Below, piece after piece: positions 1 through 55,950 of a DNA stretch of 64,000 bases. A program made the position numbers and the translations under genes. A model generated the notes under the pieces. That model was not told the origin of the DNA, did no database searches, and saw only the letters and a list, made by a program, of their open reading frames with translations. Within the stretch, counting starts at the first letter, position 1, and every line of letters begins with the position of its first letter. Source of the stretch: Anthoceros angustus (lineage: Eukaryota; Plantae; Anthocerotophyta); NCBI GenBank assembly GCA_010909165.1, contig MU008193.1:353631-417630 (forward strand). Reading direction: 5' to 3'.

Positions 1-870
1 AAGGGCGCTCCCACTTTTGTGCATGATTGATCCGGACAGTGCTTGAAGAAGAAGATGCGGACCCGGAGGAGATCAGAGCCCAGCATTACACCCTAGGGGT
101 GCTGGGAGGGAACCATTGCTATGCCGCCATGCGAACATCTCGAAATGTATCCGTGGAAGATAAATTTCAATGGCTCGAGGCCATGTATATGCGAGCTTGA
201 CAGGAAGAAATGAGGGTCTTGTGATGATCACAATGTGTATGCGACAAGAGGAAGAAGCTTGGTTTTATTGAACAAGTCTACATACATGATGAGCTTGAGA
301 TTTGGCACCGGACACACCCGATGGAAAACCTCATGCGGTGGAAGTTCAATGTGTACAAGTTCTTTGGGGATCTTTGGAGGAAACTCAAGGACACGATTAT
401 GTGGAAGATGGTGGACGGAAGACTCTGCCGTTGAGGATTGCGAGGTGCGAGGGGTAAATTGTGGGAAACGTGGACACCATTTTCCGATGTGGGAGAAGTG
501 CGAACTCCCAGGCGGGCGGGCAGCCGATCGGGGCGGCAGGCGGGCGGCAAAGCGGAAGCCACAAGACCCAACTTCTAGCAAGGCCGGTCCCGGCCCCCCT
601 CGTCGGCTCCAATGCTCGGAAGGGCATGGAGAGCATTCAAGGAGTCCCGAAGGGCGAGAAGGGTGAGGAGATGTTGATAGCATGACCGGTCATCCAAGGA
701 AAGCTGCTAAAAGATATGGATACGATGTTGGCAGAAGAAGATTAACCTTATCGAGCATGCCTTTCGAAGGCTATGAAGTGTGCCACCTTATTTGAAGTCG
801 TAAGCAGTTTCCTAAACATCACGAGGCCAAGGAATTGGCGAAGTTTCAAGCGACTTTTGCGAAAGTGGTA
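1..870 (+). CDS. ParB-like domain gene, paralog of the N-terminal half of the 1500-4340 gene (5' end outside window, frame-broken, apparently truncated after its intron donor)
   Basis: Stitched translation PLLCMIDP..YTLGVLGGNHCYAAMR (VLGGNH at 99-116), WKFNVY, LWETVDTIF.MWEKCELP, IQGKL, AKFQATFAKV followed by GTAAGT at 868-873. Each block matches the minus-strand paralog. Confidence 0.65.
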
Positions 871-1499
871 AGTGAGCGTATTCGTTAGGGGAGTGCGGCC
901 CGGTGCAGTCGCGGTGGCCAGCGCCTCCCTTCTTGTTTGTTTCCGTGGGCGCAAGGAGGCGGCGGGCCGCCCGGCGCGCTCCGGCGCTGGCACGCGCACT
1001 CGGTCGGGCGCCATGCCTCCTCCTTGCGCCATCCAACATGTTCAGCGGTGGAGTCGCGGTTGACCGTGCACCTAATCTTGACGTCTGTTCTAAAAGGGTT
1101 TCTCTTGAAACCCCCTTTTTGCAGCCTACGTTCGTTGCACAGCTGCGTGAAATCCATGAATCGACCTTTTTGTATTTCTCCATGACAGTCACGCAAACAT
1201 TTCAATTTTTGGTGCGATACGATATGGGACATTACGCATCGAAATTACGAGAAAACCATCGAGACATTCACGATCGACTTTTCCTTGGTGGCCATGCTAT
1301 TTGTGCACAAACTTGCGCGCACTCACATTTGCGTCTCCAACATTGACATCGGTCTATGTTTCTAGCTAGTTTGGCGAATGTTGTCTTTCCGTCCTCGGGA
1401 CGACGATGTCATCGTTCTCTTGCGGTAGTTGCGGATCGTAAATAGCAAGAGGAAGATATGGCGTTTCTCCACCTTGGGACTCGCCAAAGCGTCTCGGAT

Positions 1500-4340
1500 G
1501 TTGGTTGTCCCAAGTAGTCGCTTTCTTACGGTCTTAGCACTTCTTTCCCTTACGTGTTCTTAGGGTTATCGGACCTTTTTGCCATCTTCTCCTTCTTCCG
1601 GGCCCCGTGATTGACTCAAGTCTTGAAGGTCGATGGGTGCGCATGTTCCTTGAACCAAGTGTGGCGTTGCGGCCACAGGCCAGATCTCCTCCGCCATCTC
1701 TTTGGCAAAAAAACCGGATGTCCACGTTTGTGTGGTTTGGTGGTCAACTCTTCCTCGTCAGGAAACACTTCATGGCACATGTCTGTTCGATGAATATTGT
1801 GCTCCTCTGTTCTTGGTCAACGACAATACAGTTCCTCCCTTCGATGTCATAATTCCTCCAGCTTCCATCCATCTATAACCCATTCCCTCTTTACGTGAAT
1901 AGGTCATATGCGGGACCATCAACCCTATTGGCTTTTGGTAAGGAGAAACAACATGGCCATCGTTGGACACATTCAAAAGTTTCTTCACGATTGCGCTATG
2001 TCGAATAAGCGAGCATTGCTCCAATCTCGGTGCCGCTATTGGACAATGCACGCACTTCCTCATATCTTCAACGTTGGGTGAACACCATACCCACATCATG
2101 TACTCATGATTCTCGTAAAGTCCCTCGTCCAGACCAAATTGTCTTTCTCCCGGACCATTGTATAAACCCCCTTTTCACACCATTTTCGCGGTGCATTTGG
2201 ACATCCGCATCAGTGCGGTCCATGCATAAATATCACGGAAAGTCTTGCATTCGGTGATTGTCATGAATCCATCCATTATCTTCTCCAAATCCTCACATGT
2301 CATCTCCTTATCCCATGTCTCCGATAAATTGCCCCTTGGTAAATCGGCGACCACGACTTGTATTCTCTTTTCCCCAAGTAGGCAGCCATTTCACGAATAT
2401 CACCAGTTATTACCTGGTAACGGACCTTTTGCTTGCTTTTCGGAACATGGAAAATGTCTAGTTTTGCGTCGTTGTCTTCCTCTGCCAGCTCTCTCTGCAA
2501 ATCTTCCACCCTCTTCCAATTTCTTGCCGCATTGATGTGCTCTTTGAAGCTATCGGGTATCATCTTCTCTTTGTACTCTTCAGCCTGCTTCAGTGTCTGC
2601 ACAGGATGGAGACGTTCATAGGTCGAACTTGAAGACGAGTGCGCAAACTAGTTTGCGCACTTGCTAACTCGTGGCGACGCGCATGTACTTACAATGTGAT
2701 CAAACACGGTTGAAATTTCGCTATATCTTACGGTGTTGAGTGCCTCGGATATTCTCTCTCAACCGCAAATGAATTGCACCTCGGTCGAGCAAATCTTTCG
2801 GATGACATTCAACTTCTTGGCCTTCGTTATCCACGTTTTCATGCGCTCACGGTCAACTCGCCTTGAATCACTTTCTCCGGTGACGGCATAATCCTTTCAC
2901 GCTTCACAGGCATGCCAGAAAACTCTCCAATTGGTCGCATGCATTGGCTTTATCATCAAATTTGGATCCCGCTGCGGCTCATGTCAAGACACGTTTTGAT
3001 TTCCCCTCTTGCTGCCTTTCTTCCGGTTACCTTGCTGGAAGCTCACCCCTCTCCCAAAGATCGAAAACCTCGTCCACCCGTGTCCACACATGAGGCGGGA
3101 CACTAGCAATACAAGGCGGTTTACGGTCGACAAGTGCATTTCTTCCCGATCGGCGTCGCCGATGGCGCCTAGCATCCGATATAGATTGTACTTCCAATCC
3201 ATTGTAATGCTAATACCCTCCTCACCGCAATTTTCATTTCATCGTGAATATCGGACTTGCTCAATGAAAGACATCCTCTTAGGAAATCTGCCTTGACATT
3301 GTGATGCTGGCGGAGCATCTGCACAGGTTAAGCACATATATATGAGCTTCCATATCTTTGGAAGTGTGAGTTCTCCGGGTCTTACAGTTGGAGCGCATAG
3401 AAACGTGGTTCCCACCAATACTCCCATGGTGTCTGCCTTTTCAACTTGTCTTTGTCAAAGACCTCTACGCTTCTCCTTGGATCGATCATACATAGCGGAG
3501 GAAGTACTCCCTCTTGCAGGTCCCTTTTAATTTCCGGAGAAGATGTTTTCCCCATGATTCATCCACTCTTGGATCGGCGTCACGAGTAATGTAGTCTGCG
3601 CTTCTCGGCTTGGTGATGGCAACCATATCTGTCGGAATGCACCTCTTTTGTCTTGACTCTGATGATGCAGGTCCTTATCTTTGTTGGGCTCGCTCCACTC
3701 TGTCGTTGTCCGTCGGCCACTTTGGTGATAGCTGACCCGTCGGCCAGTGTCTCGTCAATGTCATTACTCTTCCTCTTTTCCCTTTTGGTTTACCTTTCGT
3801 CCTTGCGGTGGCTGGAACATCGCGTCTACCTCCTTGAGGTTGGTTGTACAGGCTCGCTCCTTCACGATTCTTTGACCCTACTGTCCAAACTTTGTAGAAG
3901 CTGCTGGGCATCGTCCAATGCATGGCGATTCTTCGGGACATTTGACGAACGTTTTGAGCCACCCTCGCTATGTATATCCTCTCTGTTGTTGTCGTGTGCT
4001 TCAACTCTATCGGTTGTCGATGCATCTCTTCGTCCTCAACATCTTCATTTGCGGTTTCATGCTCTTCATATTCACTATCTCGTCATCCGAATATCTATAC
4101 TGTGGCAAGTACCTCTCATTTCTGTTCCATTGAATCGTCATGAATTTCCCATATTGAGCGGTGATGGTGCTTTGGTCGTGGTTATGCTTTTTAGCCTCTC
4201 CATCGCTATCTCGGAGAGGATCGCTTTCACAAGCTTGTTCGGCCATCTTCATCATCATCAACCCGAACTATTTCTTTTGGACAACGCCCGGATAGTCCCG
4301 AATATGCATCACAAAGACAACCACGCCTCCATTAACCGGA
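1500..4340 (-). CDS. ParB-like + beta-class N4/N6 DNA methyltransferase-like fusion (MTase-1), frame-broken in this assembly, one intron 2692-2597; ends approximate
   Basis: VLPLCMIDP..MGVLGGNH (3405-3428; duplicate copy 5690-5712). After the GT-AG intron: RYQVITGDIRE, motif IV VVVADLPRG...WD (2331-2345), HEYMMW, motif X SPYQKPIGLM (1929-1940), motif I EWVIDG (1868-1885), motif II GRNCIVVD (1816-1839). The order IV...X-I-II is the beta class. Confidence 0.75.
2638..2661. repeat. Perfect 24-bp palindrome AGTGCGCAAACTAGTTTGCGCACT inside the MTase-1 intron
   Basis: Read directly; equals its own reverse complement. Confidence 0.95.
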
Positions 4341-4423
4341 TGCATCAACCGAAACATCCTTTGGCCGACGGTACACAAAGGCGGGCACCGGTCCTCGTCC
4401 CCACTTCAGGGCCGGACGGGGTG

Positions 4424-4817
4424 CATGCGCGCGCTGAAATGCGCGCAAGTGCGCGCATGCGGCGCGCAAGTGCGCGCAAGTGCGCGCACTTGTGCGCGCA
4501 TGGAGTCGTGCGCGCAAGTGCGCGCAAGTGCGGCGCAAAGTCGTTGTCCTCGCATGCGGCGCGCACGGGCTCCCGTGGCCCGGCGCTCTCACGGACTTGC
4601 GGCGGGCCAGGGGTCATCACGCCTGCGGCGCAGGTCTCGTGCGCGCACTTGTGCGCGCACTTGCGCACTCCTCATGCGCGCAAGTGCGCGCAAGTGCGCG
4701 CAAGTGCGGCGCGCAAGTGCGCGCATGCGCGCGCTGTGCGCGCCTTTTCAGCACCGTGCGGCGCAAGTGCGCGCCGCGGGTTCTCATGGTACCCGGTGCG
4801 CGCACTTGTGCGCGCCG
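4424..4817. repeat. GC-rich array of GCGCGCAAGT / GCACTTGTGCGC units in both orientations
   Basis: Read directly; lies just upstream of the minus-strand MTase-1 gene. Confidence 0.95.
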
Positions 4818-5136
4818 ATCATCTCCGGCACATGGCTCATGGTGCAATCACGAAAAAGTGGGTGGTCGATTCTCTTCGTACATACCTTGTCACTTGTCAT
4901 GGCGGCGTCAAGTCCGCCGGTCTTGGGTATTGCATCGCCTTGGAATCGGTTGTCGCACTCAATACCGGTGGCGATTAGAATTCCTCAAAAGAACTTCTCC
5001 CTCATTGTGCATATCAAGAGTTTGATTACGCATTGCGGCGGACTTCATACTTCCAAGCCCATAGAATGTACCCAACCACAATCTTACATGTCCTCAACGC
5101 ATCCATATACCCGTTCACCCAGGCGGGATGGGATCA

Positions 5137-5343
5137 AAATTCTCTGTAGAGTCGGTTCCTTCTTCATGTATGCACCATTCCTTGTCCTAGCCCTTACGAT
5201 AGATCTGCAAATCTCGATCAACACATTTTCTCAGCGAGAAAATTCTCCTGTAGAGTCGGTTCCTTCTTCATGTATGCACCATTCCTTGTCCGGTACATTA
5301 CGATAGATCTGCAAATCTCGATCAACACATTTTCTCACGAGAA
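5137..5343. repeat. About 102-bp tandem duplication (also present at about 7427-7633)
   Basis: AAATTCTC..GTAGAGTCGGTTCCTTC...ACACATTTTCTCA occurs twice in each copy of the larger duplication. Confidence 0.9.
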
Positions 5344-6671
5344 AGGATTCTCCAATGTGGTCCACACACATGAGGGACACTAGCAATGCCGCAGCGGTTT
5401 CGGTCGACAAGTCGCGCATTTCTTCCGATCGGCGTCGCCGATGGCGCCTAGCATCCGATATAGATTGTACTTCCAATCCATTGTAATGCTAATACCCTCT
5501 CGATTTTCATTTCATCGTGAATATACGGACTTGCTCAATGAAAGACATCCTCTTAGGAAATCTGCCTTGACATTGTGATGTGGCGGACACGCATCTCTGC
5601 ACAGGTTAAGCTGCATATATATGAGCTTCCATATCTTTGGAAGTGTGAGTTCTCCGGGTCTTCTGCGTGCGTTGGAGCGCATAGAAGGCTGGTTCCCACC
5701 CAATACTCCCATGGTGTCTGCTGCCTTTTCAACTTGTCTTTGTCAAAGACCTCACGCGCACTCCTTGGATCGATCATACATAGCGGAAGTACTCCCTCTT
5801 GCACGGGTCCCTTTTAATTTCCGGAGAAGATGTTTTCCCCATGATTCATCCACTCTTGGATCGGCGTCACGAGTAATGTAGTCTGCGCTTCGGCTTGGTG
5901 ATGGCAACCATATCTGTATCACGGAATGCACCTCTTTTGTCTTGACTCGAATTTGATGTAACGGGTCCTTATCTTTGTTGGGCTCGCTCCACTCTGTCGT
6001 TGTCCGTGACTTTGGTGATATGGCCGTCGCTGGTGTCTCGTCAATGTCATTACTCTTCCTCTTTTCCCTTTTGGTTTACCTTTCGTCCTTGCGGTGTGGA
6101 ACATCCGTCTACCTCCTTGAGGTTGGTTGTACAGGCTCGCTCCTTCACGATTCTTTGACCCTCTTGTCCAAACTTTGTAGAAGGCTGGGCATCGTCCAAT
6201 GCATGGCGATTCTTGGGACATTTGAAGCGTTTTGAGCCACCCTCGCTATGTATATCCTCTCTGTTGTTGTTGCTTCAACTCGCGGTTGTCGATGCATCTC
6301 GTCCTCAACATCTTCATTTGCGGTTTCATGCTCTTCATATTCTCTCACGTCATCCGAATATCTATACTGGTGCAAGTACCTCTCATTTCTGTTCCATTGA
6401 ATCGTCATCGAATTTCCCATATTGAGCGCGGATGGCGGTGCTTTGGTCGTGGTTGCGACCTTTTCCTAGCCTCTCCATCGCTATCTCGGAGGATCGCTTT
6501 CCTAGCTTGTTCGGCCATCTTCATCATCATCAACCCGAACTATTTCTTTTTGGACAAGCCGATAGTCCCGAATATACGCATCACAAAGACAACCACGCCT
6601 CCATTAACCGGATGCATCAACCGAAACATCCTTCGGCTTGGTACACAAAGGCGGGCACCGGTCCTCGTCCC

Positions 6672-7065
6672 CGCACTTGTGCGCGCAAGTGCGCGCAAGT
6701 GCGCGCAAGTGCGCGCACTTGTGCGCGCAGTGCGCGCCGCAGATCGCGCGCGCATGCGGCGCGCAAGTGCGCGCATGCGCGCACTTGTGCGCGCATGCGG
6801 CGCGCAAGTGCGCGGCCTCGCATGCGCGCGCATGCGCGCGCACTTGTGCGCGCCGATCCGTCCACGGACTTGCGGCGGGCGGGTCCGCGCCGCACTTGTG
6901 CGCGCAAGTGCGCGCAAGTGCGCGCATGCGCGCACTTGTGCGCGCACGCTCCTCATGCGCGCAAGTGCGCGCAAGTGCGCGCACTTGTGCGCGCAAGTGC
7001 GCGCATGCGGCGCGCAAGTGCGCGCAAGTGCGCGCAAGTGCGCGCAAGTGCGGCGCAAAGCACGC
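6672..7065. repeat. Second copy of the GCGCGCAAGT array, with different unit number and order
   Basis: Read directly. Confidence 0.95.
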
Positions 7066-8591
7066 GGGTTCTCATGGTACCCGGTCGCGGCGCGCGATGC
7101 ATCTCCGGCACAGGCTGCGGTGATGGTGCAATCACGAAAAAGTGGGTGGTCGATTCTCTTCGTCTACATACCTTGTCACTTGTCATGGCGGCGTCAAGTC
7201 CACTTGAGTCTTGGGTATTGCATCGCCTTGGAATCGGTTGTCGCACTCAATACCGGTGATGGCTTAGAATTCCTCAAAAGAACTTCTCCCTCATTGTGCA
7301 TATCAAGAGTTTGATTACGCATTGCGGCGGACTTCATACTTCCAAGCCCATAGAATGTACCCAACCACAATCTTACGTGTCCTCAAGCGCATCCATATAC
7401 CCGTTCACCCAGGCGGGATGGGATCAAAATTCTCTGTAGAGTCGGTTCCTTCTTCATGTATGCACCATTCCTTGTCCTAGCCCTTACGATAGATCTGCAA
7501 ATCTCGATCAACACATTTTCTCAGCGAGAAAATTCTCCTGTAGAGTCGGTTCCTTCTTCATGTATGCACCATTCCTTGTCCGGTACATTACGATAGATCT
7601 GCAAATCTCGATCAACACATTTTCTCACGAGAAAGGATTCTCCAATGTGGTCCACACAATCCGATATCATCGAAAAATTTTGATGCCACTCATCCGGCGG
7701 GCTGATGCTCCCTTGCTTGGCTTGGGCCTCATTGTGATGTCCCTTGTGAAGGCCCACTCTTCCTATCGGATGCTCCTTGTGGGAGGAGAGTCGACTTTAC
7801 GGTGATGGTGGATGTTGGTGGTTCATGACCACCACCGAACCTCCTCTGCTGCACTCTTCCGTTTCGAAGCTCCTTCGACATTGGCTTGTCCTTTTGCGTT
7901 TTGGAGGTTTGGGGTGAGGTTGAGGCTCTACAAAGTTGGCTTTGTTTTACGCGCATGGGATGGACATGCTGTCACGCGGATGCACCGTCAAGCATTAGAG
8001 GAAAAGCAGGCACCCCAAACCATGCGGAAAGAATGGAATGTTGAAGTTGTCTTCATTTCATGAAACAAGCCAAATTATAGATCCAGGAAACACCTATTTC
8101 GGGCTCCCTTTGAAGGCTCTTCTTCACAAGCCTCTTCTTCACGGGCTCCCTTTCACGCCTCACACTCGGCACAACCAAGCAAGGCATGCCACAAGCAAAC
8201 ACTGCGGGTGCCTTCCACACCCAAGCACCAAGGCCCATGACCCAAACATGGTGCCTTTCACACCCAAGCACCAAGGGTGCATAACATAAGCAACCAGCAG
8301 CTTGCGCGCACCAGCCACACTGCGAAGCGGACCGGGCCTTTTGTCACCCACGATTTTGGGCGAACACACACACAGTGGCGAAGACTTCACCTGCGGTTTT
8401 AAGTTCGACTGGTTGCCTTGCGACGCCTCAAGCGCCATGAGGTTGCCAACCCGACAGAGGTCTCGGCCTATGTCACTTGGCGCCCTCAACCGCCGATTCA
8501 AAGTCTGTGCTGTTCAAAGCGGAGCCCTTGTGCGGATCGCCTCCAATCAAGGATGCATGTCGCCCACTAGCGCAGTTCCTTGTCGGAGAGA

Positions 8592-9030
8592 CCCTCAAGT
8601 CGCGGATGCACATGGGAGATGCACGCTGCAAGAGCACAGTCGCCCACGAAGCAGCGCTCTTCCTATCTCACATGCGCATCCACGATTCTCGGCAAAACCG
8701 GATGCCTTGTGTGCAGCACGCAATCGCTCAAGCAAGGCGGACCAGCAGCGCGCGGTCTTCCCTATCGCGCTCAACCACCGATTCACACACAACTCATGCC
8801 CAACACGTTCCTTGTTCAGACCCTCAAGTCGCAGATGCACATGGGAGATGCACGCTGCAAGAGCACGAAGTCGCCCACGCAGCAGCGCCGATCTCACATG
8901 CGCATCCACCACGATTTGCAAAACGCGGATGCCTTGTTATGCAGCGCAATCGCTCAAGCAAGGCGGGCACAGCGCTCACGCGGATGCAAGTCGCACACCA
9001 TCAGCAGCGCTCTTGCCCATGTTACTTAGG
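8592..9030. repeat. About 228-bp imperfect tandem repeat (2 copies) upstream of the transposase-like gene
   Basis: CCCTCAAGTCGC(G/A)GATGCACATGGGAGATGCACGCTGCAAGAGCAC starts at about 8592 and again at about 8820. Confidence 0.85.
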
Positions 9031-9088
9031 CGGAAGGAATCTCAAACTTGCCTAAGTGGGTTAACTAACTGCGGGTTGAAGGTTAGGT

Positions 9089-9096
9089 TAGGGTTT
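9089..9096 (+). promoter_or_regulatory. Telo-box (TAGGGTTT) about 200 bp upstream of the transposase-like coding region
   Basis: Motif match at a plausible promoter position; function not shown. Confidence 0.35.
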
Positions 9097-9299
9097 CCGT
9101 TATAGCCCTTATTTCAAGCGAGCGTTTGATAATTAACATTGGCGGCTACTATAGCAGGTTAAACACGCCACCATAATCATGTATGCATATTTTAACGTTC
9201 AAACACGGATGGACAAACTCCATAATCAGCACTTCTTCGTCTCATAGTTGCGGACCATGCTCGAAGTTTGAAGGAGCGGTGAAATCTGACGCTTCTCCA

Positions 9300-12200
9300 T
9301 CCTACTCGTGCGGTCGGAGTCGGGCGGGCGAATGGAAGGCCATAAGCGGCAGTGGCACGGTCTCGAAAATGTTTCACGAATTGATGTTTTTGGTACGCAT
9401 CGCCTTGCGTCGTCGCGGAAGATTGAGAAGGTGACAATCATGGACACCACTCCGAGCATGGAAGGCATCGGAAGGTCTCATCATCGATACAACTCCGGTT
9501 GAAGAAGGGAGAGGAGGTAGGCCAAGCATTACGGATACCACGCCAAATCGGACATTAGGAGCGTGAAGATGGAATGCGCGGAAATTGTTTCTTCATCGCT
9601 CCATGGAGGAGGTCGGGAATGATGGGTGAATTTTGCGGGAAGGAGGATGCGGGCACGAACACGGGTGGCATCCGAGGAGCCTTTCACGAATCCTCGAGTC
9701 CACATTGTCCGGTGAAGCGTAGACATTATCAAGCGGAGATTGAAGAGGACCATGAAGGCGTTGAAGAAATACACAACGCATGGTCTTCGCATTCTTTGTG
9801 GCGAGTTGTTTCTTGCAATTGGGAAAGAAGAATATAGAGAGCCTCGGATATCGCTTCTTGGGATTGCCTCGAGCGGGAAATATATTTGCAAGGATTGCTC
9901 GAGGTAGAACAAGCAACCTATCTTGGCAATGTTCTCAATTTTCTCACAGGAGACAGTTGCAATGTTGTGTCTGAAGTTTCGGAAAAGTGTTACGCATTGG
10001 ATGGCGGAGGTATGAACATTTGAAGCAGTACTAACGAACACACCATGGTCATCGAATTGAAGTTCCAAGGGCATGGCGAAGATCATGTTCGGAATGCATT
10101 GCTTGGATGGAAAAGTTTTTCAAGCTAACGGTGACGCATGCCCAATGTTTGATTTTAACTTGCGATTCATATACCAAAGGAGATATTCCGGGACTACAAG
10201 CGGGAGGTTTCAAGAATTTGGGTTGACCAACGTCTCTCATTCTCATACATGCCTTATGGAAGAAACATTTTCCAAAAGTGAAGATACCAAAGTGTAGTCG
10301 TTTTCAAAATCGTCCAATGCGAAGCGTTGAAGGCGACCATCGAGATGACCGACCGGCAAACAAACAAGGTATTTCATATCCGAGTTTCTTTTGACTTCCA
10401 TGGAATCATGAGCACTCAAGCCTCTTGTCTCGTGCTTGTTCGCCCACACGTGCACTTGTCTTGCGCCGCGAGCAAAGTGAGTCGCTGGCGCGCATTCACA
10501 GGAGGTAGGGCGGCGGAAGGAAAGTGCGCGCATTTGTGCGCGCGCATTTGCGTGCGCGCGCGCGCGCACGCGGCGCACGAGTGGAGCTCCTCTTACGCCC
10601 GCGGTGGCGTGCGGCGCGCATTTGTGCGCGCGCGCGCACGCCGGGTGATGCGGTCCATCTTGGTCTTGGCCCGGTCGCGGTCGTCCATCGCGTCGCAGAC
10701 CAAGGACAACGTTCGACCATGTGATCCATTTTTGCGTGTGAGGTCCATGAGCGGCATCTTCGTCAACATCGGTCGGCGATCAAGCGGGCGACTAAAACTT
10801 GCAAAACATCGTTTGAAGTGTAAAGGCCAGAGCAAATACATTGGTATGGCGATAGGCGGGATGGACCAAAGCAAGGCGGAGCTCCACATTTTCTGCCCCT
10901 CAAAGGATTTTGCGGATGGTCTCATCCGGGTCCATGTTGTGGGTTGTTTGGTATACAACAACATTATGAAGACCGGTGTATGTGAACTTCCGAATATTGG
11001 AGCAGCGCCAACAACTATTCATATCATCCGGGATGTTATTCTCACATATGAGATGGTTACGCGAAGGCGTTTTACTTGCTGGACAACACGGCGGAGAAAA
11101 CAAGAATATGTTGTTGTTTGCATACTTGAGTATGCTTGTCGAAGCGGGTCTTGATAAGGTGAAGGTGGGCTTCCTTCTTGTCGGGCACACACATGATGCG
11201 ATTGACCAAATGTTCTCGTGCTTTTCTAAAAGTCTCGAGCACAAAAAGCAATGTCACTCGAAACCCTTATGAGTTTGATTCATCAGCTTATACACCCAAT
11301 CCGAAGTGAAAATGGTTTAGGTGGCGATTTGAGCTTTATCGGCCCAATGGGATGGGTAAAGAGGACACGAGATGCGTGATGAGAATTTGCACAATCATAG
11401 TTATCGACATCAATTCAAAATTTCAAGGGAAGAAAAGTGGCAGCCCATGATTCTTCGTGGCAAGGCACTTTCTACTTGTTCACATTGGGAACCGTTGGAG
11501 GTTTGGAGTTCCTTGAGAATACAGAAAGCAGAGATATAAGGGGCGCCTTTATGTCCACTTCTTGCATGGAAACCCGCGGACGCATAAATCATTGGCAGCC
11601 ATTAGGAAAGCCCTCGAAGAACCGATGCAAAAATATCTATCTCGGAAGACAAAGTATGGTGGAACTCGTTACGGGCATCACGCGATCGATATTTGCGACA
11701 AAATCGGAGGAGGAGTCCATCGAGATCTTCAAAAGCATGGGAGTGGTACAGGGGCGGTGGCGGAACTTAAATCCATTGGCGTTCGGATGTCTTTGTCATT
11801 CGGCTCCGATTCGCGAACCACAGCCGTCACATGTATGTAAATTTTAGGCCAAGCGCGACCATCGAGTTGGCGAGATTCGATGGGGATGTGTCCGAGATCG
11901 ACGAGGCCATATGATTGCGATCCCATGTAGACGACGGTCGAGCAGGCCTTTGGATTGCAGTGGAAGACTTGGATTTCTTATGTGTGAACCTTACCTAGTT
12001 GTCCGGTGGTGGGTGACGGAGAATAGCAATGCGTTTGAGGAAGGTACCTACCGGAGGAGATATTGGCTCCACAGTGATAGAGGGTTTGCGACAACGGAGG
12101 CGACCAAGCACTGGATCATTGTTGATATCGGAGACATTTATTTTGGCATCTGGGTTCTCGTTTGCAAGGGATAGCACTCTACAAGTCCGTACAGGAGCTT
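9300..12200 (+). CDS. DUF7869-type DDE transposase-like protein with a C-terminal Tudor-like (PFWIA-type) module; frame-broken, probable intron about 10370-10700; ends approximate
   Basis: Stitched motifs LWKKHFPKVKIPK.SRF..C..C (10257-), KYIGMAIGGMDQSKAELPHF (10852-10875; family pattern IDGMDQ), YL.LDNT.GENKN (11079-), VEAGLDKVKVGFLLVGHTHDAIDQMFSCFS (GHTHDAIDQ 11183-11209), GHMIAI..AFWIAV..LVVRWW (about 11905-12015). Family identity is from recalled motifs. Confidence 0.75.
10520..10650. repeat. GCGC-rich cluster (GTGCGCGCATTTGTGCGCGC...) in the probable transposase intron
   Basis: Read directly; resembles the upstream arrays. Confidence 0.85.
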
Positions 12201-12357
12201 ATCAAGACAAAGCTATTCGAACTTCAACATCTACCAGTGGAAGAAGGTATGAGGTTGAAGATATGAGATGACCACCAAGTTCGAGAGATGCATTGGAGGA
12301 AAATGATGATTGGACGAAAATCCGAAATAAGGGTGGTGTAGTTAAGCCGTGGTGATG

Positions 12358-14490
12358 AGACATCCGACTTCGATTCGGCACCAATCGCAACAAGAACCAG
12401 CGGCGGAGGCAGCAGGAAGGGACGGCTATTGGTGCTTTTGAAGGCATGTTTGATGATGATCGGCACAAGGTCACCGTCGAAGGAGGCGGAAACACCGTAG
12501 AGGATAGAAAGGTGATAGGGTATTCTTCATAGCTTTAGGGCATAGGGTAGATAGATGAGGCATGTCTATGTGGACGTCCGATTTGTGCAACTTCTTATGT
12601 CGTCGGGCCGCCACATCCACAGACCTCAAGAAGACATATTTCCTCGATCGAATGATGTATTTCTTTCGTTTTGCCTTGTGCGCGCACAAGTTTGCGCCTC
12701 CTTGTTTGGCGCGCGCCACGCGCCTAGCCCCGCGGTATACAAAACATATAGAACCACACAAATTGCGAAACTCTTGCGAAATTATGGAAGAATTCGGTCC
12801 ATGCCTTCATCACATCCGACTTCGATTCGGCTGTCGCAACAAGAACCCGCGCGAGCAGCGGAACCGGGAATGCTTTTGGTGCATGTTTGATGATGATCCG
12901 GCACAAGGTCACCGTCGAAGGAGGACACCGTAGAGGATAGAAAGGTGATAGGGTATTCTTCATAGCTTTAGGGCATAGGGTAGATAGATGAGGCATGTCT
13001 ATGTGGACGTCCGATTTGTGCAACTTCTTATGTCGTGGGCTTCCGCCACATCCACGGACCTCAAGAAGACATATTTCCTCGATCGAATGATGTATTTACT
13101 TTTCGTTTTGCCTTGTGCGCACAAGTTTGCATACCCTTGTTTAGGCGCACTTACGCGCCCTTCCAGTATACAAAACATATAGAACCACACAAATTGCGAA
13201 ACTCGACATGCGAAATTATGGAAGAATTCGGTCCATGCCTTCATCACCGACAAAGTATCCATGCACACGAGTGCAAGGCGCCACCGATGTAAATGACCGG
13301 ACGAAGTGGTCCGGAGAATGCCGAATCCGATGGATGAACACCTACAAAACTCAACAAAACCAGCCCAACGGTTTTGCGGAATAGGGTTGGGATTTTTCCA
13401 AAACCCCTTTGACAGGAGAAAACCCCTTCCGAGCTTGGACAGTCGCGGCTGGCCGTGCCTTCTCTTATCAATTGGTTGTTTGACCACCGTCATTGCTTGC
13501 GAAGCAGGAGACATTGAGGATTTGGAAAGCTGCCAAAACCATTCCAAGATTTTGTTTATAGCGCATAGCTGAAGCGGATGGAAGAAGGCGAAAACAAATG
13601 GCCGACAAGGACATGGATGCGGTGGCGGTTTGAGTGCAGGTCTTGGACAAAGTGGCATATCGGTGGTGCATCGAGACATTTTGGATATGAAAGGATTTTG
13701 CCACAGGAGGTATACTCTTCTTTTCTGCGACCTCCCTCGAGGTTCTGAGGCATGTCTATGTGGACGTCCGATTTGTGCAACTTCTTATGTCGGGCTTCCG
13801 CCACATCCACGGACCTCCAAGAAGACATATTTCCTCGATCGAATGATGTATTTCGTTTTGCCTTGTGCGCGCTGTTGCATACCCTTGTTTAGTGCGCCTA
13901 GCCCCACTTGGTATACAAAACATATAGAACCACACAAATTGCGAAACTCGACATGCGAAATTATGGAAGAATTCGGTCACGGCCCTTCATCACACCGACA
14001 AAGTATCCATGCACACGAGTGCATGGCGCCACCGATGTAAATGACGGACGAAGTGGTCCGGGCCGAGAATGCCGAATCCGATGGATGAACACCTACAAAA
14101 CTCAACAAAACCAGCCCAACGGTTTTGCGGAATAGGGTTGGGATTTTTCCAAAACCCCTTTGACAGGAGAAAACCCCTTCGAGCAGACGTGTCTGCGGGC
14201 TGGCCGGCGCACTCTCTTATCAATTGGTTGTTTGACCACCGTCATTGCTTGCGGCAGGAGACATTGAGGATTTGGAAAGCTTGCCAAAACCATTCCAAGA
14301 TTTTGTTTATAGCGCATAGCTGGAAGCGGATGGAAGAAGAAAACAAATGGCCGACAAGGACATGGATGCGGTGGCGGTTTGAGTGCAGGTCTTGGACAAA
14401 GTGGCATATCGGTGGTGCATCGAGACATTTTGGATATGAAAGGATTTTGCCAGGAGGTATACTCTTCTTTTGCGACCTCCCTCGAGGTTC
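12358..14490. repeat. Two overlapping tandem duplications (about 455 bp: 12358-12812 / 12813-13250; about 750 bp: 12990-13748 / 13748-14490)
   Basis: GAGGCATGTCTATGTGGACGTCCG occurs at about 12557, 12990 and 13748; the DLPRG exon occurs twice (13729, 14474). Confidence 0.85.
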
Positions 14491-15300
14491 TGGCGGCATG
14501 AGAATGACAAGGCTTTCGTTGAAGAAGAATTGAAAGAGCTCATCGCTCTTTCAGCGAGAAGACCACCGATGTGTTCGGATAATTCTTATGCATGGGGTGG
14601 ATGGGGTGATTCAAGCCGGGGAGGCTTTGAGGTCGTGGTGCGGGAAAGGAGTCATACCGGTATGGGAGAAAACCAACATCCCAATCAATGCTGGTGCCGC
14701 TGAAACAAAGGAATATTTGATGGAAGCGAAGGAAGACAGAGTCCAATGTCGGAAAAGCTCCTCTTTTGCGGCAAAGACATCAAGCAGTGCTCCCAAGAGT
14801 TATCCGACATGGACCGTGGTGAAGAAGGCGATTTACCACCGGTGATAAGATGGTCGACGCCATATCGAAACACATGGGCTTATTAGGCATGTTGGTGAAC
14901 ATGTTCTCCAACGAAGACGACTAGATTGTTGACACTGCGGGATCGGGATCATTTTGGTGGCGGGATTCAGCGGAAAAGGAGCGTTGTGGCCATTGACAAA
15001 GGCACGATGCTCAATGTATATGTCTAGCAGTGAGCGGGTTGGAGCGGTGCCGGACGAGTTCGAAGAAATAACAACGATAAGTTTTCGCGGGGCCTGCAAG
15101 TTTTGGGCAAAGGAGATCCGTGCACGGAGGCATTGACAGAAAATGCAAGTGTATAGCTTGCTTGGAAAGAAGGTCGAGAATGAAGGACTTGACACTCAGA
15201 CGACCCGTTGAAGACCAAGCGCATTGACAATATGGGATGAAAGCGGCACACTACCACCAGACAACAGAGGCTCGACGTTTTCGCTTTGCAGTTGAAGGTG
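12500..15300 (+). CDS. Second beta-class N4/N6 DNA methyltransferase-like gene (MTase-2), frame-broken; recognisable core 14250-15010, ends uncertain
   Basis: LPKPFQDFVYSA.SWKRMEE..ADKDMDA..YSVVHRDILDM aligns to MTase-1 IPDSFKEHINAARNWKRVED..AEEDNDA..YQVITGDIREM. Motif IV LLFCDLPRG (14474-14488), PY(Q)KHMGLLGMLVNMFSNEDD.IVD..AGSGS (about 14855-14950), RSVVAIDK (about 14974-15000). Confidence 0.75.
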
Positions 15301-15832
15301 ATGACTTTGGTGACACGGAAAGGCGTGATTTGGAAAATGTAGAAAGCGGTGCAGTTCGGAGCTCAATTTGGTTGAAGTAGATGACCCTTTGGGTAGCAGG
15401 ACTTGTAGGCGTGAGGGGCTCTGTCCAGGTTGACGGTATAATTCCGTTTTGACTCTTCGTGGAAAATGCCCGAATTTGATTTGAATGCATATTACGTGTT
15501 TTGGACCCATAGTCTTTGGCACTCTGCCCTTTCCCCAGTATGTCTGGAAGCACGGACGACCGCGACCAAACAAAAGTGTGCATACATGGAAAAAACCTCT
15601 ATTTTACTTACATTGTTCTAAGTGGAACTGCCATTAAGCACATCTCTTTTAAAAACACGTGTTTTGCATGATATGAGAAAGGGGTGGCAACCTCCGCCCA
15701 AAGCGCAAAAGAGGCTTTCAAGAATCCGCCGATATTGCGCGGACTCTGTTTCAACTATGAGTCTAGATGCCAAAATCGTTGAACATCGAGCTGCACGCAG
15801 AGACGAACTAGGACACGCGGTGCCTGGAGACG

Positions 15833-16375
15833 GTGGCAATGGTTGCCGAAGATGCTACTGTGGAAGCAATCGTGGAGGGGATGACTGGTCTAGACACAAA
15901 GTTGGTTGGGTTTAACAAGAACCTAGAAGTGGCTGCCAACTTTCTCGAACCCACACCCAGGAGATTGAAGGGCGAATGGCGGAAGGTTAAAGAATCACGA
16001 GAGATGTCTACGTATGATAGCAAGAGCGAGGATGAAGAGCCAGCAAAGAACCGGGCTTCAAGGGGGCCAGGGGTTACTCGCGGGCGCAGACGGGGCGGTG
16101 GCAAAAAAAGAGATGCAATGCAGGTGTTCACAATGGCCACGCTTGGTTCCGATGACCATGGAAGAGCATGGAGTAGCCAGGTGAGCGCGAGCAAGTATGG
16201 TCATGGGTGCACACCTTCCCCAGTATCGGGGTGGCCCAAAACCCTTGCTGCCACAACTAGGGCAAAGGCCACCACCACATGCTCGGGATTTGATGGTGTA
16301 GGGCAGGAGTCACGGTACAAGGATAGGGTTTGTGATGAAAATGCCTCGGAGGAGGAGTGTTTGTGCGACAAATAG
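15833..16375 (+). other. Unassigned ORF (180 aa as listed) within the putative element, possibly another cargo gene
   Basis: Open frame with coiled/charged and basic (GRRRGGGKKR) segments; no recognised domain. Confidence 0.3.
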
Positions 16376-18902
16376 AAAGACATTGAGTCCAACTCAGACA
16401 TCGAGAGGAAGGACGCTGCAAAGTGAGGCAGTCAAGCCGGGTCTATGCCCCAGGGCGTTATGGATAATGTTTGACTTCACATGCAGAAGGTGCTGGCGAG
16501 TGAAAAGCACAAGCGACACTCCCGATGTTGGACGATGCGAACCTGGTTACCCTCGTCGGTAACCATGTTGCCCTGGTGGATCATGATGAGGGGCCGGATA
16601 CTTATGTTCAGCGCCCGACCTTTGAGAAGGAATAGTGTGGTGTGTTGTAGCCGTGTATCAGGCAGTAAGAAAAAATCAACTGTGTAGGCCAATTTCGTAC
16701 GCCATGTAAAGATTGTCGAAACTGAGAACCCTGCTATTGGAGATGCCGCTATAGAGCCTCCCCATGCTAACAAGGTGTATGTTGAATGTGGTGTCTGCCC
16801 TGACCTTGAAGATTATGTTGCCATGACTCCAGATGACTTGCGTAGGGTATGGAGTTTGAGCATCTTCCTCATGATGAAGATGTTTTGAGGAAGATGCTGA
16901 CACCCTTCCACCTGAATGCCGCGATGTGGAGATGAAGGGCAAGAGGGGCCCAAAGCGGAAGAGGGTTCACGATATCTGTTACGAAGTGCTGCCCGAATAT
17001 TTGCACCCTTTTGGTAAGTACGCTAAATTACAGTCAATGTAATTTTTAGCGTAACAGCCCGACAGAGGCCTGTTTGCAACGTGAAATTCAAGTTCGATTT
17101 AACAGTCTTGAAATAGCCATAATTTCCATGATTGATTATCCAGGAAGAATCAAGCTTGCTATCCATGCCCTGTTTGCCAAGCCTAGTTCAACTCTGGATT
17201 AGGCCTGATTCAATCTTGATTTTGGGTTGATTTCTAGACTGATTTTCAGGCCCGAATTTTAGGCTTCAATCAGGCTAGATTTCCCATGTTGATTTCAAGC
17301 TTGAACACAAGTCTGAACACTTAAGCTTGAATTTTAAGCTGGAAGATGTAGTCATGTATTTTCAAGCTTGAATTAGCTACCTTGATTCTTTCACCACAGA
17401 ACCCTAAACTTTGCTGCTGCTATAGTACTAACCTTGTTGTTGTTGTTGCTCTTGTGTTTCAAGGTTCATCTACTGTGGGAGTCCCTCGTACTTGTCCGTG
17501 AAGGACAGAGTCCATTTTGCGGTCTGATACATATGCAATCCACTCATATATCCCTTTTGGAAATAGATACAAACCATCCAGCTGCATATTGAGACATGTA
17601 TCAGGCACACTATGACTGGGCCAAGGGAGTTTCAACCTATTGTCCTGCAGTTTTTTAGCACTAATTTGAAGCATTGGGGAAACAATGTTAAAAATGAGGC
17701 ACATTATCTTTTGCAGGCTTGGGAGAAAGTCTAAGGCCCATAACCAGCAAAAACTGGCTGCCATGAGTAGGATAAAGGAGGTAGGAAGCAATACATATTC
17801 ATGCTCCATTTCCTCTCCTCCATTTTTTAACATGACTAATGGTTGCCTTTTAGCAGTTGGACTATTATTGGGGCTCTGCCATAGAGGTTCGGTACTAGTG
17901 GAGAAACAGAGAGTATACCTTGTGGAATATAGGGATGAGCTAGAGATTAGAATACATTAGGATGTAGGGGCGGTCTGGTTAGGAGAGTAGATTCAAGCCA
18001 TATTTTGTAAACAAATTCCCAAACCCCTTAAATCCCTCTCCCCTTCTCTCCCCTCCTCTCTTCCCCTCCCCCATTCTTTCTTCTCCATTTTACTACAAGC
18101 CCTTGTCTTTTACAACTGCATTTTGAACCACTGTTCACTTTACTATGCTACTTTTACTACAGATATTTTCCTACTGCCTTTACTTTCCAGGCGCTTTACT
18201 ACATACGATTTACTACAGGAGTTAGCAAATATCAGTTAGCAAACCACAGAGAATTAACTTCAATTAATAGACCATGGTTACTCAATTCCAGTTAACAAAC
18301 CATGATTTATTAACACAAATTAATAAACCATGGATTTTTAACTGGTGGTTTAGGTTTGATGGTTTATTAATTAGCCATGGTTAAAACTATTGTAACCCAG
18401 TAGTAATCTAATGTAGAAAAATATGTAGGAAAGTAAACTGTAGGTACTCTGACTAACCTGTGAACGGTGTACATGATTAGAATATATCGTATAGTACCTG
18501 CTCCCACTACTGAAGTTGAAGGCCTGTCGAAGTGGTTCTAGGATACGTGCACGCTTGAGTAGGCTGCACTGTCCTTTGATTGCCATGGATTTCCTGTCTG
18601 CTTTGCTTGTCCCTTCTTAGCAGGGGAGGGGTTTTCTTCCCTTCCGCACGTTTTCGGCCCCGTGTATAACATACCTTTGTTCTCTTTGCTTGGGGACTTT
18701 TGTAATTCTCGTTTTATGCTTATAAAGTCTCAAAATCTAGCCAAAAAAACATAGATGGTAATGTTGTGGTTACCATATGATCACATAGCGTGATTGTGGG
18801 TAATGGCATGTGGTGGTAGTTGTTCTGAATAATATTTTGAAGTAAAGTTTTTAGTAAATATTCTCCATCAGATTTATATAAACCTCAGTTAATGGAGGCG
18901 TG

Positions 18903-35334: not shown

Positions 35335-37001
35335 ATGGATTATAGAAATGATACCAGATCTTTAAATGTGTATGTTAAGAATTTACATAAGCAGTATGTA
35401 GATAATGATGAACTGTTTAATAATTTTAAAGGTTTTGGAATAATTTTGAGGTGTAAAGTAGTAGTTGACAAAAATGGATTATCGAAAGGGTATGGATATG
35501 TTTGTTTTCGGGAAAGACGGGGAGCTCAGCTTGCTATGACAACTAGCATGGTTTTGTATGGTTTGCACTTAGATGTAACTCCTTACCTCTCTCGTGCACT
35601 TCGAGAGCAAATTAAGGATGGTAGTGAAGGGGCAAATTATACAAATGTGTATGTTAAAAATTTCAAGGAGAACACAAATGAACAGATATTGCGAAATATA
35701 TTCCGCAGTTTTGGAGAAGTTATTACTGTTCGAGTAATGAAATATGATAATGGGCAGTCCAAGCGAGCTGGCTTTGTACATTTTTTTCATCATGAAGATG
35801 CTGCTAATGCTGTTGCTACATTAAGCGACGATTGATTAAGATAGATGGTATGTTCATCGTGCTCACGATGAATCAGGAGGAACAATTTTTGAGATATAGA
35901 TTGCAAAAAGATGTCAATCTTTATGTAAGAAACTTTGACGATGGTGTTGATGCTAAGATGCTGCAAGAGGCGTTTTCACCATTTGGTGTAATTTCTTCTT
36001 GTAAGGTTGCGAAAGATGGGCAAGGGTTTAACATGGGATATGCGTTTGTTGCATTTACCACTCCAAAAGAAGCTTCAAATGCAATATATCATATGCACGG
36101 TCAAACATCCTTGATTGGAGGACCATTGTTTGTTCAATTAGCTTTATCCAAAGAAGATAAGGAAGATGAGTGGACATCGGCTCGTGCAAGTGTAGAGGCT
36201 AGAATTCATGACAGTGCGAGGAATTGGATTGGGAGCCTAGGTTCACAACCTAGAAGTTCGGTAGGAGCTGAAGCTTTTAGGAGTCTTTCAAGGACTTTAA
36301 CTCCCAAGAGTCTTGATTCACAACCACAAAGTTCAGCACGAAGTAGAACATTGCTTCCTCATGAATTCGAGGCTTGTAGTTCTACGAGCACTTTGACAAA
36401 GAGTCAAGATTCACAGCATCGAGATTCAATAAGAACATCGATAGCGTTTTCACGTGCAGCAGTTGAAGCTTGGAGTCATGAAAGCGCTGTAAATGAGAGT
36501 CTTAATTCACATTGTCAAAGTTCAGGAACAAGAGGGATAATATCAGCTCCAAGTGCAAAAGAATCCAAATATGTGAGGAATTTGATGGAGGGTCTTGAAT
36601 CACAAGCTCAAAGCTCAATAAGGATAACGATAGCCATTCCAAGTGTGGAAGTTAGGAATGATGAGAGCCTTAAATCTCAATCTAAAAGGACAACTAGAAT
36701 AACAACAGTCCTTGCAGCTGTAGAAGCTAGGAATGATGTTACGAAGTCTACACTGAGTCTTGTTTCAGAGCCGCAAAGCTTAGCAAGAATTGCTGACAAG
36801 AAAAGGATAGCCATGTTTGGAGAATTACTATATTCATGTATAGTTAGAATAGAAACAAATCATGTATGCAAAGTGGTATCATTTATACTAGAAAATATGA
36901 CCCAAGATGAGATTGAGGATCTCCTTGAATCCCCAAAAGCTTTAGAAGCTGAAGTTGTTAAGTCAGTGCACATAATAAAATGTGATAAAAATAATAAATA
37001 A
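35335..37001 (+). CDS. Intronless PABP-like protein, copy 1 (3 RRM + Ser-rich linker + divergent MLLE/PABC); frame break near 35825-35880
   Basis: LNVYVKNL..FGIILRCKVVVDKNGLSKGYGYVCF; YTNVYVKNF; NLYVRNF..PFGVISSCKV; MFGELLY..KVVSFILE. The break is small indels relative to copy 2. Confidence 0.85.
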
Positions 37002-55389: not shown

Positions 55390-55950
55390 AAGTGCATTCC
55401 CTCGGGCTCCTGATGGTGGCCCGTCATCCACAGTCCACTATGGCTTCGATTCTTGGCCTAAGAATTCGAAATCACACGTCCACTCAAGTGTCATTCAGCA
55501 TCCCATCTTTGTTCTCTCGATATCTTATCAGAGGACAGGGAACAAAGTAAGGAGAAGTCATACAAATGACAGACCAAGTTAGCGTGCAAGTCTATAATAG
55601 ACTTCTTTTTTTTCTTCTTACATGGACTAAGAAAGTATCCCGATCTAAATTAGTATGTTGATATATTAATGATAGTTAATTTTTTTGCTTAGGAAAGCTA
55701 TTCTGCTTTAGGCAGATCCCAAGGAATGAACTAAACCTACCTATATAAAGGATGAGATAGAAGTCATTCTCTAACACTTGTACTACCCTTCTTGAAAAGG
55801 ATCGAGCTGCCTAAAGGCACGAAGTTGGTAAAACACATGATAATGGAGTCAGAAGAGGAAGACAGATTTGGGGCGTTTTTGGTGGATGAAACATTAATAC
55901 AAATATTAAGGATTGTGCGAACTGGAATATGGATAATCCAAATAGTCAAC

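Follow-up and report, generated by a model that had tools for sequence, protein, structure and literature searches.

The window analysed here is a stretch of 64,000 nucleotides from the hornwort Anthoceros angustus (assembly GCA_010909165.1, contig MU008193.1, positions 353,631 to 417,630). Genes for DYW-type PPR proteins (long, intact, and intronless) and for PABP-like RRM proteins, together with a tRNA and a fragment of a SABATH-type methyltransferase, mark it as nuclear land-plant DNA. Positions 1 to ~15.5 kb contain a transposase gene, ParB-like sequences, DNA methyltransferase-like sequences, and GCGC-type motif arrays, and this block probably consists of rearranged copies, clustered together, of a single family of large DNA transposons (at least 10 kb) from a non-seed land plant. 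The unit of the family would consist of two divergently oriented genes: a DUF7869-type DDE-like transposase and, on the other strand, a spliced ParB-like/methyltransferase gene. The accessory product of this second gene is predicted to have an N-terminal ParB-like (ParB/Srx-fold) domain joined to a beta-class N6/N4 DNA amino-methyltransferase.

Genes and motif arrays of the probable transposon block

The most complete unit in the window extends from ~1.7 kb (the methyltransferase end) to ~12.3 kb (the transposase end) and has a 2.29-kb tandem duplication inside it. Its transposase gene lies on the plus strand at 10161-12304. As the sequence-only reading of this DNA had proposed, the gene is of DUF7869 type: the piece at 10970-11269(+) matches the Pfam family DUF7869 (PF25273) with an E value of 2e-17 and a score of 63.9 bits (cut-off 26), the matched nucleotides being 11093-11248. 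Frameshift-tolerant alignment with the transposase of a related metagenome contig, L016, across 10161-12304 gives a score of 376 (shuffle maximum 66), and the window reading requires ~19 frame changes. Three conserved acidic motifs align between window and relative: GGMDQ with DGMD, LLDN with LDN, and GHTHDAIDQ with GHTHDHIDQ. The DUF7869 domain is present too in the relatives P0004-P0006 and in genes of L016 and another related contig, L018. No paper naming DUF7869 was found in the literature.

The second gene of the unit is read on the strand opposite to the transposase, from 3507 to 1736, and the domain calls for its ParB-like and methyltransferase parts rest on homologues in metagenome and Logan contigs. 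For the ParB-like part, whose signature is GGNH, 51 homologues of the GGNH open reading frame (ORF) were aligned as a family without Pfam domains, called A2. Seven of the 51 members match phrog_1033, 'ParB-like partition protein', among them P0129:170-372 (E 3.7e-8, residues 13-141), and eight weakly match Pfam DUF6551 (best E 0.0012), a phage family that occurs together with the ParB-CTPase fold in phage proteins according to a recent survey. Judged from these sequence matches, the GGNH domain is ParB-like; the call is carried by the homologues, and the window copies are tied to them by homology. Family A2 has no match to Pfam ParBc, and its profile finds nothing relevant among the PDB sequences. 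At box II the family reads GGNH-x-x-EARR and the window GGNHCYAAMR; there is no arginine directly after the histidine, and the box II (GxxR) arginine is not evident.

The window copies were compared with A2 by our own local profile-to-DNA alignment, which allows frameshifts and was calibrated on 186 tiles drawn from elsewhere in the window (mean 26.9, standard deviation 3.3, maximum 40.7) and on shuffles. Three regions score above these tiles, with z 6.5-9.5 against shuffles. Copy U1, at 3017-3507(-), lies directly upstream of the methyltransferase-like gene B' on the same strand and scores 54.6 over profile columns 66-247 (z 9.3). Copy U2, at 5508-5783(-), has GGNQ in place of GGNH as assembled and scores 47.2 (z 6.5). 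The partial, frameshifted copy A, at 1-431(+), is truncated at the window edge and scores 52.0 across nucleotides 84-299 (z 9.5); its motifs include LPLLCMIDP, YTLGVLGGNHCYAAMR, and LGFIEQVYIHDE. The matches between A2 and the window are colinear and comprise LxLxDP, Y.xGGNH, K..IY.xL, HN..., RMSFIEQVR.IHDE, and VW..VDEVF.LWE. A plain hidden Markov model (HMM) of A2 has no match among the ORF pieces of the window, because the window copies shift frame every 50-100 bp.

The sequence-only reading had counted two clear ParB-like GGNH paralogs. The ParB-like copies are real, and there are three of them, but U1 and U2 were rejected as independent paralogues, as they belong to the two tandem units of ~2.29 kb at 3146-5430 and 5425-7715. 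Each of these units consists of the 5' part of the ParB-like gene and its upstream array, and their alignment over 3146-7715 has 2080 matches, 60 mismatches, and 102 gap events. It is because of this duplication that the two arrays, like the two copies of the gene, look alike.

The beta-class amino-methyltransferase-like part, gene B', occupies 1736-2647(-). Aligned with frameshifts allowed, residues 2-262 of the L016 methyltransferase match the window from 2557 to 1736 on the minus strand with a score of 136 (null maximum 62; z 20 against shuffles), and plain tblastn with the first L016 methyltransferase exon finds gene B' at E 0.006. Its frameshift-interrupted minus-strand reading runs ...YQVITGDIREMAAYLG / KRIQVVVADLPRGNLSETWDKEM ... 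HVVSPYQKPIGLM..., with the motifs PDSFKEHI..., YQVITGD..., VVVADLPRG (a variant of motif IV), YQKPIGLM..., and GRNCIVVDQEQ. The order of these motifs is the permuted one of the beta class: on the minus strand GD...VVVADLPRG (~2345) lies upstream of YQKP... (~1950), so that motif IV comes before motifs X and I, and L016 and a Logan contig, L019, show the same permuted order. In the second copy, at 14284-15070(+), a stop and frameshifts interrupt the reading; it scores 83 against the L016 gene (z 9.7; null tile maximum 62) and keeps ...LVNMFSNEDD*IVDTAGSGS... and RKRSVVAIDKG.... The claim of two beta-class methyltransferase-like genes thus holds by way of the relative, whose exon at 11673-11996(+) (...YQKPQLLINYLIDIFSNEGDWVLDLFSGSGK) reaches 33.4 bits with PF01555 on its own, above the cut-off of 26.7. 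The best solved relative of the L016 methyltransferase exon is M.MboIIA.

Motif I (FxGxG) is intact in L016 (LFSGSG), in L019 (LFFGSG), and in the second window copy (TAGSGS), and is disrupted in gene B' as assembled. Motif IV is non-canonical throughout, reading DLPRG in all three window copies (2345(-), 13729(+), and 14474(+)), NIPHD in L016 (~11340), and DISHG in L019 (~2220). Since DLPRG is kept in diverged window copies, this argues for a trait of the family rather than random decay. The sequence 'SPPW' at 1466(+) was considered as a motif IV and rejected, as the stretch is antisense to the other pieces and lacks support from homologues. The tandem repeats of 433 and 750 bp at 12490-14500(+), or 12.5-14.5 kb, carry a repeated first (N-terminal) methyltransferase exon (...YTLLFCDLPRGS at 13729 and 14474). 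These repeats, like the second methyltransferase copy at 14.3-15.1 kb and the GGNH piece at 1-431, would be pieces of further copies of the element.

The block is also marked by its short motifs. The motif AGTGCGCGC occurs 32 times, where 0.30 occurrences are expected, and no shuffle reached 32; all of the occurrences lie between 1315 and 10531. Arrays of the GTGCGCGCAA type, with a period of 10 bp, are found at 4420-4810 and, with ~37 units, at 6680-7060, and a looser GC-rich array of the GCGCGC type lies at ~10440-10650 within the 5' part of the transposase gene. Units of the two GTGCGCGCAA-type arrays occur in both orientations, and a perfect palindrome, AAGTGCGCGCACTT, stands where the orientation flips, at 4478 in array 1 and at 6707 and 6973 in array 2. 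Long tandem arrays are also seen in or upstream of the 5' part of the transposase in relatives, at 5510-6772 in L016 (87 bp x 14.7) and at 4652-5226 in L018 (192 bp x 3); they hold the same relative position as the window array at 10440-10650, and their sequences are unrelated to it.

Relatives and the probable unity of the element

Insight into how these parts belong together comes from other organisms. The DUF7869 piece has three short homologues in a collection of 5.8 billion proteins, two of them on the metagenome contigs L001 and L002, and on both contigs the strand opposite to the transposase carries, ~5 kb upstream of the core of that gene, an ORF with ...YKYYVIGGNH... in it. Contig L016, which comes from another metagenome and was reached via the A2 member P0138, has its DUF7869 domain at 3778-4053(-) and a GGNH ORF at 9863-10564(+), followed downstream on the same strand by three beta-class methyltransferase exons. 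The gene layout is common to the window and L016: the ParB-like part and then the methyltransferase are read in one direction, and the transposase is read away from them in the other. The same parts, in the same order and orientation, are found in full in L016, in part (GGNH gene and transposase) in L018, L001, and L002, and for the fusion gene in L019; the accessory gene and the transposase point away from each other in the window and in L016, L018, L001, and L002.

In L019 the ParB-like part and the methyltransferase part can be seen to be exons of a single gene. The GGNH ORF of this contig ends with ...EEFQK and is followed at once by a GTAAGT donor, and the next ORF, MKKDDNGAPDSF..., begins directly after an ...AAAAG acceptor, so that the GT...AG intron between them is in phase. 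Within the window, the ORF at 2303-2647(-) spans the junction of the two domains (...LKQAEEYKEKMIPDSFKEHI...), and the ParB-like part has its C-terminal motif there too.

Contigs L001, L002, and L018 share ~8 kb at ~90% identity that ends at the same base (...TATGTT) in all three, after which the flanks are unrelated. Sharing of this kind up to one sharp terminus is the behaviour of a mobile element. The evidence from termini is one-sided, as the second end was not found in L016 or L018; the element in L016 is at least 10.6 kb in size. Taken together, the common layout in independent contigs and the shared terminus bear out the claim of linkage, and support by comparison of sequences that transposase, ParB-like domain, and beta-class methyltransferase belong to one mobile element.

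It might be argued instead that the block consists of dead, unrelated repeat pieces and pseudogenes brought side by side by chance, and that the transposase and the ParB/methyltransferase sequences were never one element. The condition of the block would fit this, with all of its genes broken, several partial copies in both orientations, tandem duplications, and no termini found in the window. Chance adjacency is nevertheless improbable, given that the arrangement of the parts, in both order and orientation, is repeated in L016, L018, L001, and L002, which come from other organisms, that the ~8 kb common to copies end at one terminus, and that CpG content is uniform across the block.

Chance adjacency of another sort would apply if the ParB-methyltransferase sequences were host genes or their decayed duplicates (relatives of DN4MT1, for example) lying beside a transposon. 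A bacterial-type N4 methyltransferase is indeed a bona fide, tandemly duplicated host gene in Marchantia (bioRxiv 10.1101/2021.02.12.428880), and the window lies amid ordinary plant genes. However, the GGNH family is multicopy in the relatives, with 51 homologues on many contigs, always among repeats, and one cluster at 90% identity having 43 member sequences; moreover, the position of the gene relative to the transposase is fixed. The window itself has at least three ParB-like and at least two methyltransferase copies, all broken, and their motif IV is not the TSPPY that DN4MT1 is reported to have. A host origin of this kind is the least probable of the explanations considered. A transposon family that carries both genes is the reading followed below.

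State of the copy, points against the assignment, and the neighbouring genes

As assembled, every gene of the transposon block is interrupted by small indels or frameshifts, with roughly one indel per 100 bp. Between the tandem units at 3146-5430 and 5425-7715 the 102 small gap events, mostly of 1-3 nt, stand against only 60 substitutions, and the density of frameshifts in the transposase is similar to that between the units. Conserved motifs are intact on either side of frameshifts (LLDN followed by GENKN, for example), and the host genes in the same window have ORFs of >2 kb. Indels that outnumber substitutions suggest errors of assembly consensus in the repeat; consensus errors left by poor polishing of a multicopy repeat would account for the pattern no less well than real decay. 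Consequently, the apparent pseudogenisation may be partly technical.

The window copy is non-functional as assembled, and by itself it is probably inert. Several results weigh against assigning the block to a transposon with a ParB-methyltransferase cargo. Searches made directly with the pieces of the window copy were negative: the methyltransferase pieces have no PF01555 match in Pfam at E<=10 and nothing significant in PHROGs or, by phmmer, among the PDB sequences; the longest of them, window:1773-2174:-, has in a phmmer search of 1.84 billion representative proteins only three spurious matches and no self match; and the GGNH pieces are without significant match in Pfam, PHROGs, and PDB-sequence searches. 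A home-made beta-methyltransferase HMM, built from 14 phage and E. coli PF01555 proteins, likewise has no significant match on the window pieces, and on a read-through with X at the breaks it reaches only 8.8 bits, a score obtained by 1 of 2000 shuffles and, given the number of places searched, suggestive only. The frameshift-aware and profile checks that the sequence-only reading had called for are divided in outcome, with frameshift-tolerant alignments to relatives scoring above the null and direct profile searches of the ParB and methyltransferase pieces negative.

Other points concern the predicted proteins and the relatives. Motif IV (DLPR, NIPH, or DISH) is without the usual aromatic residue of the canonical (D/N/S)PP(Y/F/W). 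The AlphaFold2 model of A2, with a mean pLDDT of 41.3, is unusable for fold. The window transposase matches no solved or named transposase family, and the RNase H-like fold of DUF7869 is an assumption. The relatives have only 27-75% protein identity. Shared termini, which had also been called for, are present as the one sharp terminus of L001, L002, and L018, but neither terminal inverted repeats nor target duplications were found in the window, the left end of which is cut by the window edge. Finally, the motif arrays described as the element's own are strongly enriched, as given above, but are not shared by relatives: L001, L002, L016, L017, and L018, which are AT-rich, have 0 matches to the GCGC arrays. 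These arrays are, it appears, lineage-specific.

The block also differs from its surroundings in composition. Observed/expected CpG is ~0.9-1.4 (about 1.0) across 1-15.5 kb and falls sharply to 0.2-0.7 beyond ~16.5 kb, while GC content is little changed. Plant repeats are normally CG-methylated and depleted of CpG, and undepleted CpG in one is unexpected. A young element, or one without CG methylation, would fit as its source.

The CpG values would also fit foreign DNA that arrived recently among depleted flanks. Under that explanation an endogenised virus or virus-like fragment (giant-virus or Polinton-like, for example) brought in a phage-type ParB-methyltransferase, and the DUF7869 gene belongs to a co-resident or nested transposon and not to its carrier. 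Fusions of ParB with methyltransferase are typical of phages and viruses (bioRxiv 10.1101/2025.10.10.680097). Yet the window pieces scanned against Pfam and PHROGs have no capsid, polymerase, packaging ATPase, or integrase signal, and the precomputed Pfam matches of called genes in the 17-20-kb related loci are otherwise only to domains of long terminal repeat (LTR) retrotransposons. In addition, the accessory gene has spliceosomal introns, and a tblastn search of 50,697 phage records with the GGNH protein gives no match. A viral origin is accordingly very unlikely, and the transposon family remains the preferred reading.

Beyond the block, three paralogous intronless PABP-like genes, at 35335-37001, 42904-45006, and 55792-57972, have four RRM-type regions and an MLLE-like C-terminal end; their middles differ in tandem repeats, of 174 bp x 4 at 43828-44499 and of 42/84 bp x 12 at 57153-57661, the latter encoding LLSTDGL-type repeats. 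An intact DYW-type PPR editing-factor gene at 49292-51445(-), of 717 codons, ends with ...CSCGDGC, and adjoining it a second PPR gene at 53405-54696(-) is apparently split over two frames. The best homologues of the PPR protein of the window, in lycophytes, ferns, Ginkgo, liverworts, and Logan contigs, are at most 52% identical. Nearer to the block, protein-level matches within 21300-24000 recur ~1.7 kb apart (...AAQSNPRRPGE... at ~21.6 and 23.3 kb; SIWPSFGELWK at 22189 and 23895; ORF at 22888-23418), which suggests another local duplication. The ORF at 27570-28037(-), in an AT-rich stretch, is by eye OTU-type cysteine protease-like (...GGLWGDEVAIYWLAHSEGKIIWV...). Tandem arrays of 39 bp and 35 bp follow it at 28576-30135, and this region may be repeat-derived.

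Proposed role and comparison with known systems

By analogy with phage ParB-methyltransferase fusions and with proposals made for algal transposons, the accessory protein would bind the DNA of its own element and amino-methylate it, giving N6-methyladenine (6mA) or N4-methylcytosine (4mC). The palindrome-bearing GCGC arrays beside the accessory gene would be candidate binding or target sites. A more specific scenario, which we consider unlikely, is that an intact ParB-methyltransferase recognises the GCGC arrays and extends N4-cytosine (or N6-adenine) methylation across the element, excluding host CG 5-methylation and silencing. The undepleted CpG block would then be the footprint of this activity, and such elements could be the source of amino-methyltransferases recruited by the host in non-seed plants.

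DNA amino-methyltransferases of bacterial type are very rare among eukaryotes. If land plants have a family of this architecture, such accessory genes would reach into the embryophytes and would be tied to the uncharacterised DUF7869 transposases, a Pfam family that would thereby gain a biological context; there would also be a concrete source from which amino-methyltransferase genes of non-seed plants could come. Directly testable predictions follow from the palindromic arrays next to the ParB-like gene and from the lack of CpG depletion in the block.

DUF7869-like proteins may be Sola1-like, which is a lead only. The closest published architecture is that of Sola1-1_Ec32, a 21.5-kb element of the brown alga Ectocarpus, in which the gene opposite the transposase encodes a ParB-like plus N4C/N6A DNA methyltransferase protein (Dinatale et al. 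2025, PMC12477816). Both systems join a ParB-like domain and an N4C/N6A-type methyltransferase in one protein, encoded on the strand opposite to the transposase inside a large DNA transposon, and for both the proposed role is to bind and modify the DNA of the element itself. They differ in host, which here is a land plant, in the transposase, here recognised as DUF7869 only, and in motif IV, here non-canonical. Compared by description, the ParB-like ORF of ~230 amino acids and the methyltransferase exons of ~270 amino acids in L016 are set against 1104 amino acids in Sola1-1_Ec32.

In the red alga Bostrychia, giant Plavaka elements (EnSpm/CACTA-type) carry PAG2, an N6A methylase with a SET domain, and PAG3, in which a 2OG oxygenase is joined to a ParB-like domain (Petroll et al., bioRxiv 10.1101/2025.02.11.637652). 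There too a DNA-modifying enzyme is combined with a ParB-like domain in the accessory genes, and inverted repeats in tandem arrays adjoin the ParB-like gene (bioRxiv 10.1101/2025.02.11.637652), just as the window arrays with AAGTGCGCGCACTT palindromes adjoin the GGNH gene. However, the ParB-like domain of Plavaka is fused to the oxygenase, its methylase is separate and has the SET domain, and its transposase is of a different superfamily. Basidiomycete KDZ/Plavaka transposons carry TET/JBP dioxygenases (Iyer et al. 2014; PMC12730594). They resemble the window element as cut-and-paste transposons with DNA-modification enzymes as cargo, and differ in kingdom, in transposase, and in the enzyme, a 5-methylcytosine (5mC) oxidase.

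Fusions of the ParB-CTPase fold with N6_N4 methyltransferases are frequent in phages and prophages (bioRxiv 10.1101/2025.10.10.680097; Iyer et al. 2015, PMC4738411). The order of domains, ParB-like and then beta-class methyltransferase, is the same here, and phrog_1033 and PF01555 as the best library matches, and M.MboIIA as the best solved relative, point the same way. In contrast to the phage proteins, the gene here is eukaryotic, has spliceosomal introns, and lies inside a eukaryotic transposon; no direct similarity to phage DNA was detected, and neither the box II arginine nor the aromatic residue of motif IV is conserved.

The remaining systems are more distant. The VANDAL transposons of Arabidopsis and their VANC proteins can be likened to the window element in one idea only, that a transposon encodes a protein which acts on short motif arrays specific to that transposon; VANC is no methyltransferase, and the arrays here are not conserved in relatives. 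DN4MT1 of Marchantia, compared by motif alone, has TSPPY as its motif IV (bioRxiv 10.1101/2021.02.12.428880), where the window has DLPRG. N4CMT of bdelloid rotifers is stated to have no eukaryotic homologues (PMC8885841).

The sequence-only reading had put the element forward as a candidate new system, and this does not stand, as a ParB-like plus methyltransferase accessory protein opposite the transposase is already described in Sola1-1_Ec32. No paper was found that links PF01555 to eukaryotic transposases. Searches not aimed at land plants found no land-plant transposon-borne ParB-methyltransferase, the reports found being from brown, red, and green algae. Since the same architecture is published for algal transposons, the window element is best classed with this known kind, as a member from a land plant, and not as a new system. 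It stands out by its DUF7869 transposase, its non-canonical motif IV, and its apparently lineage-specific GCGC arrays.

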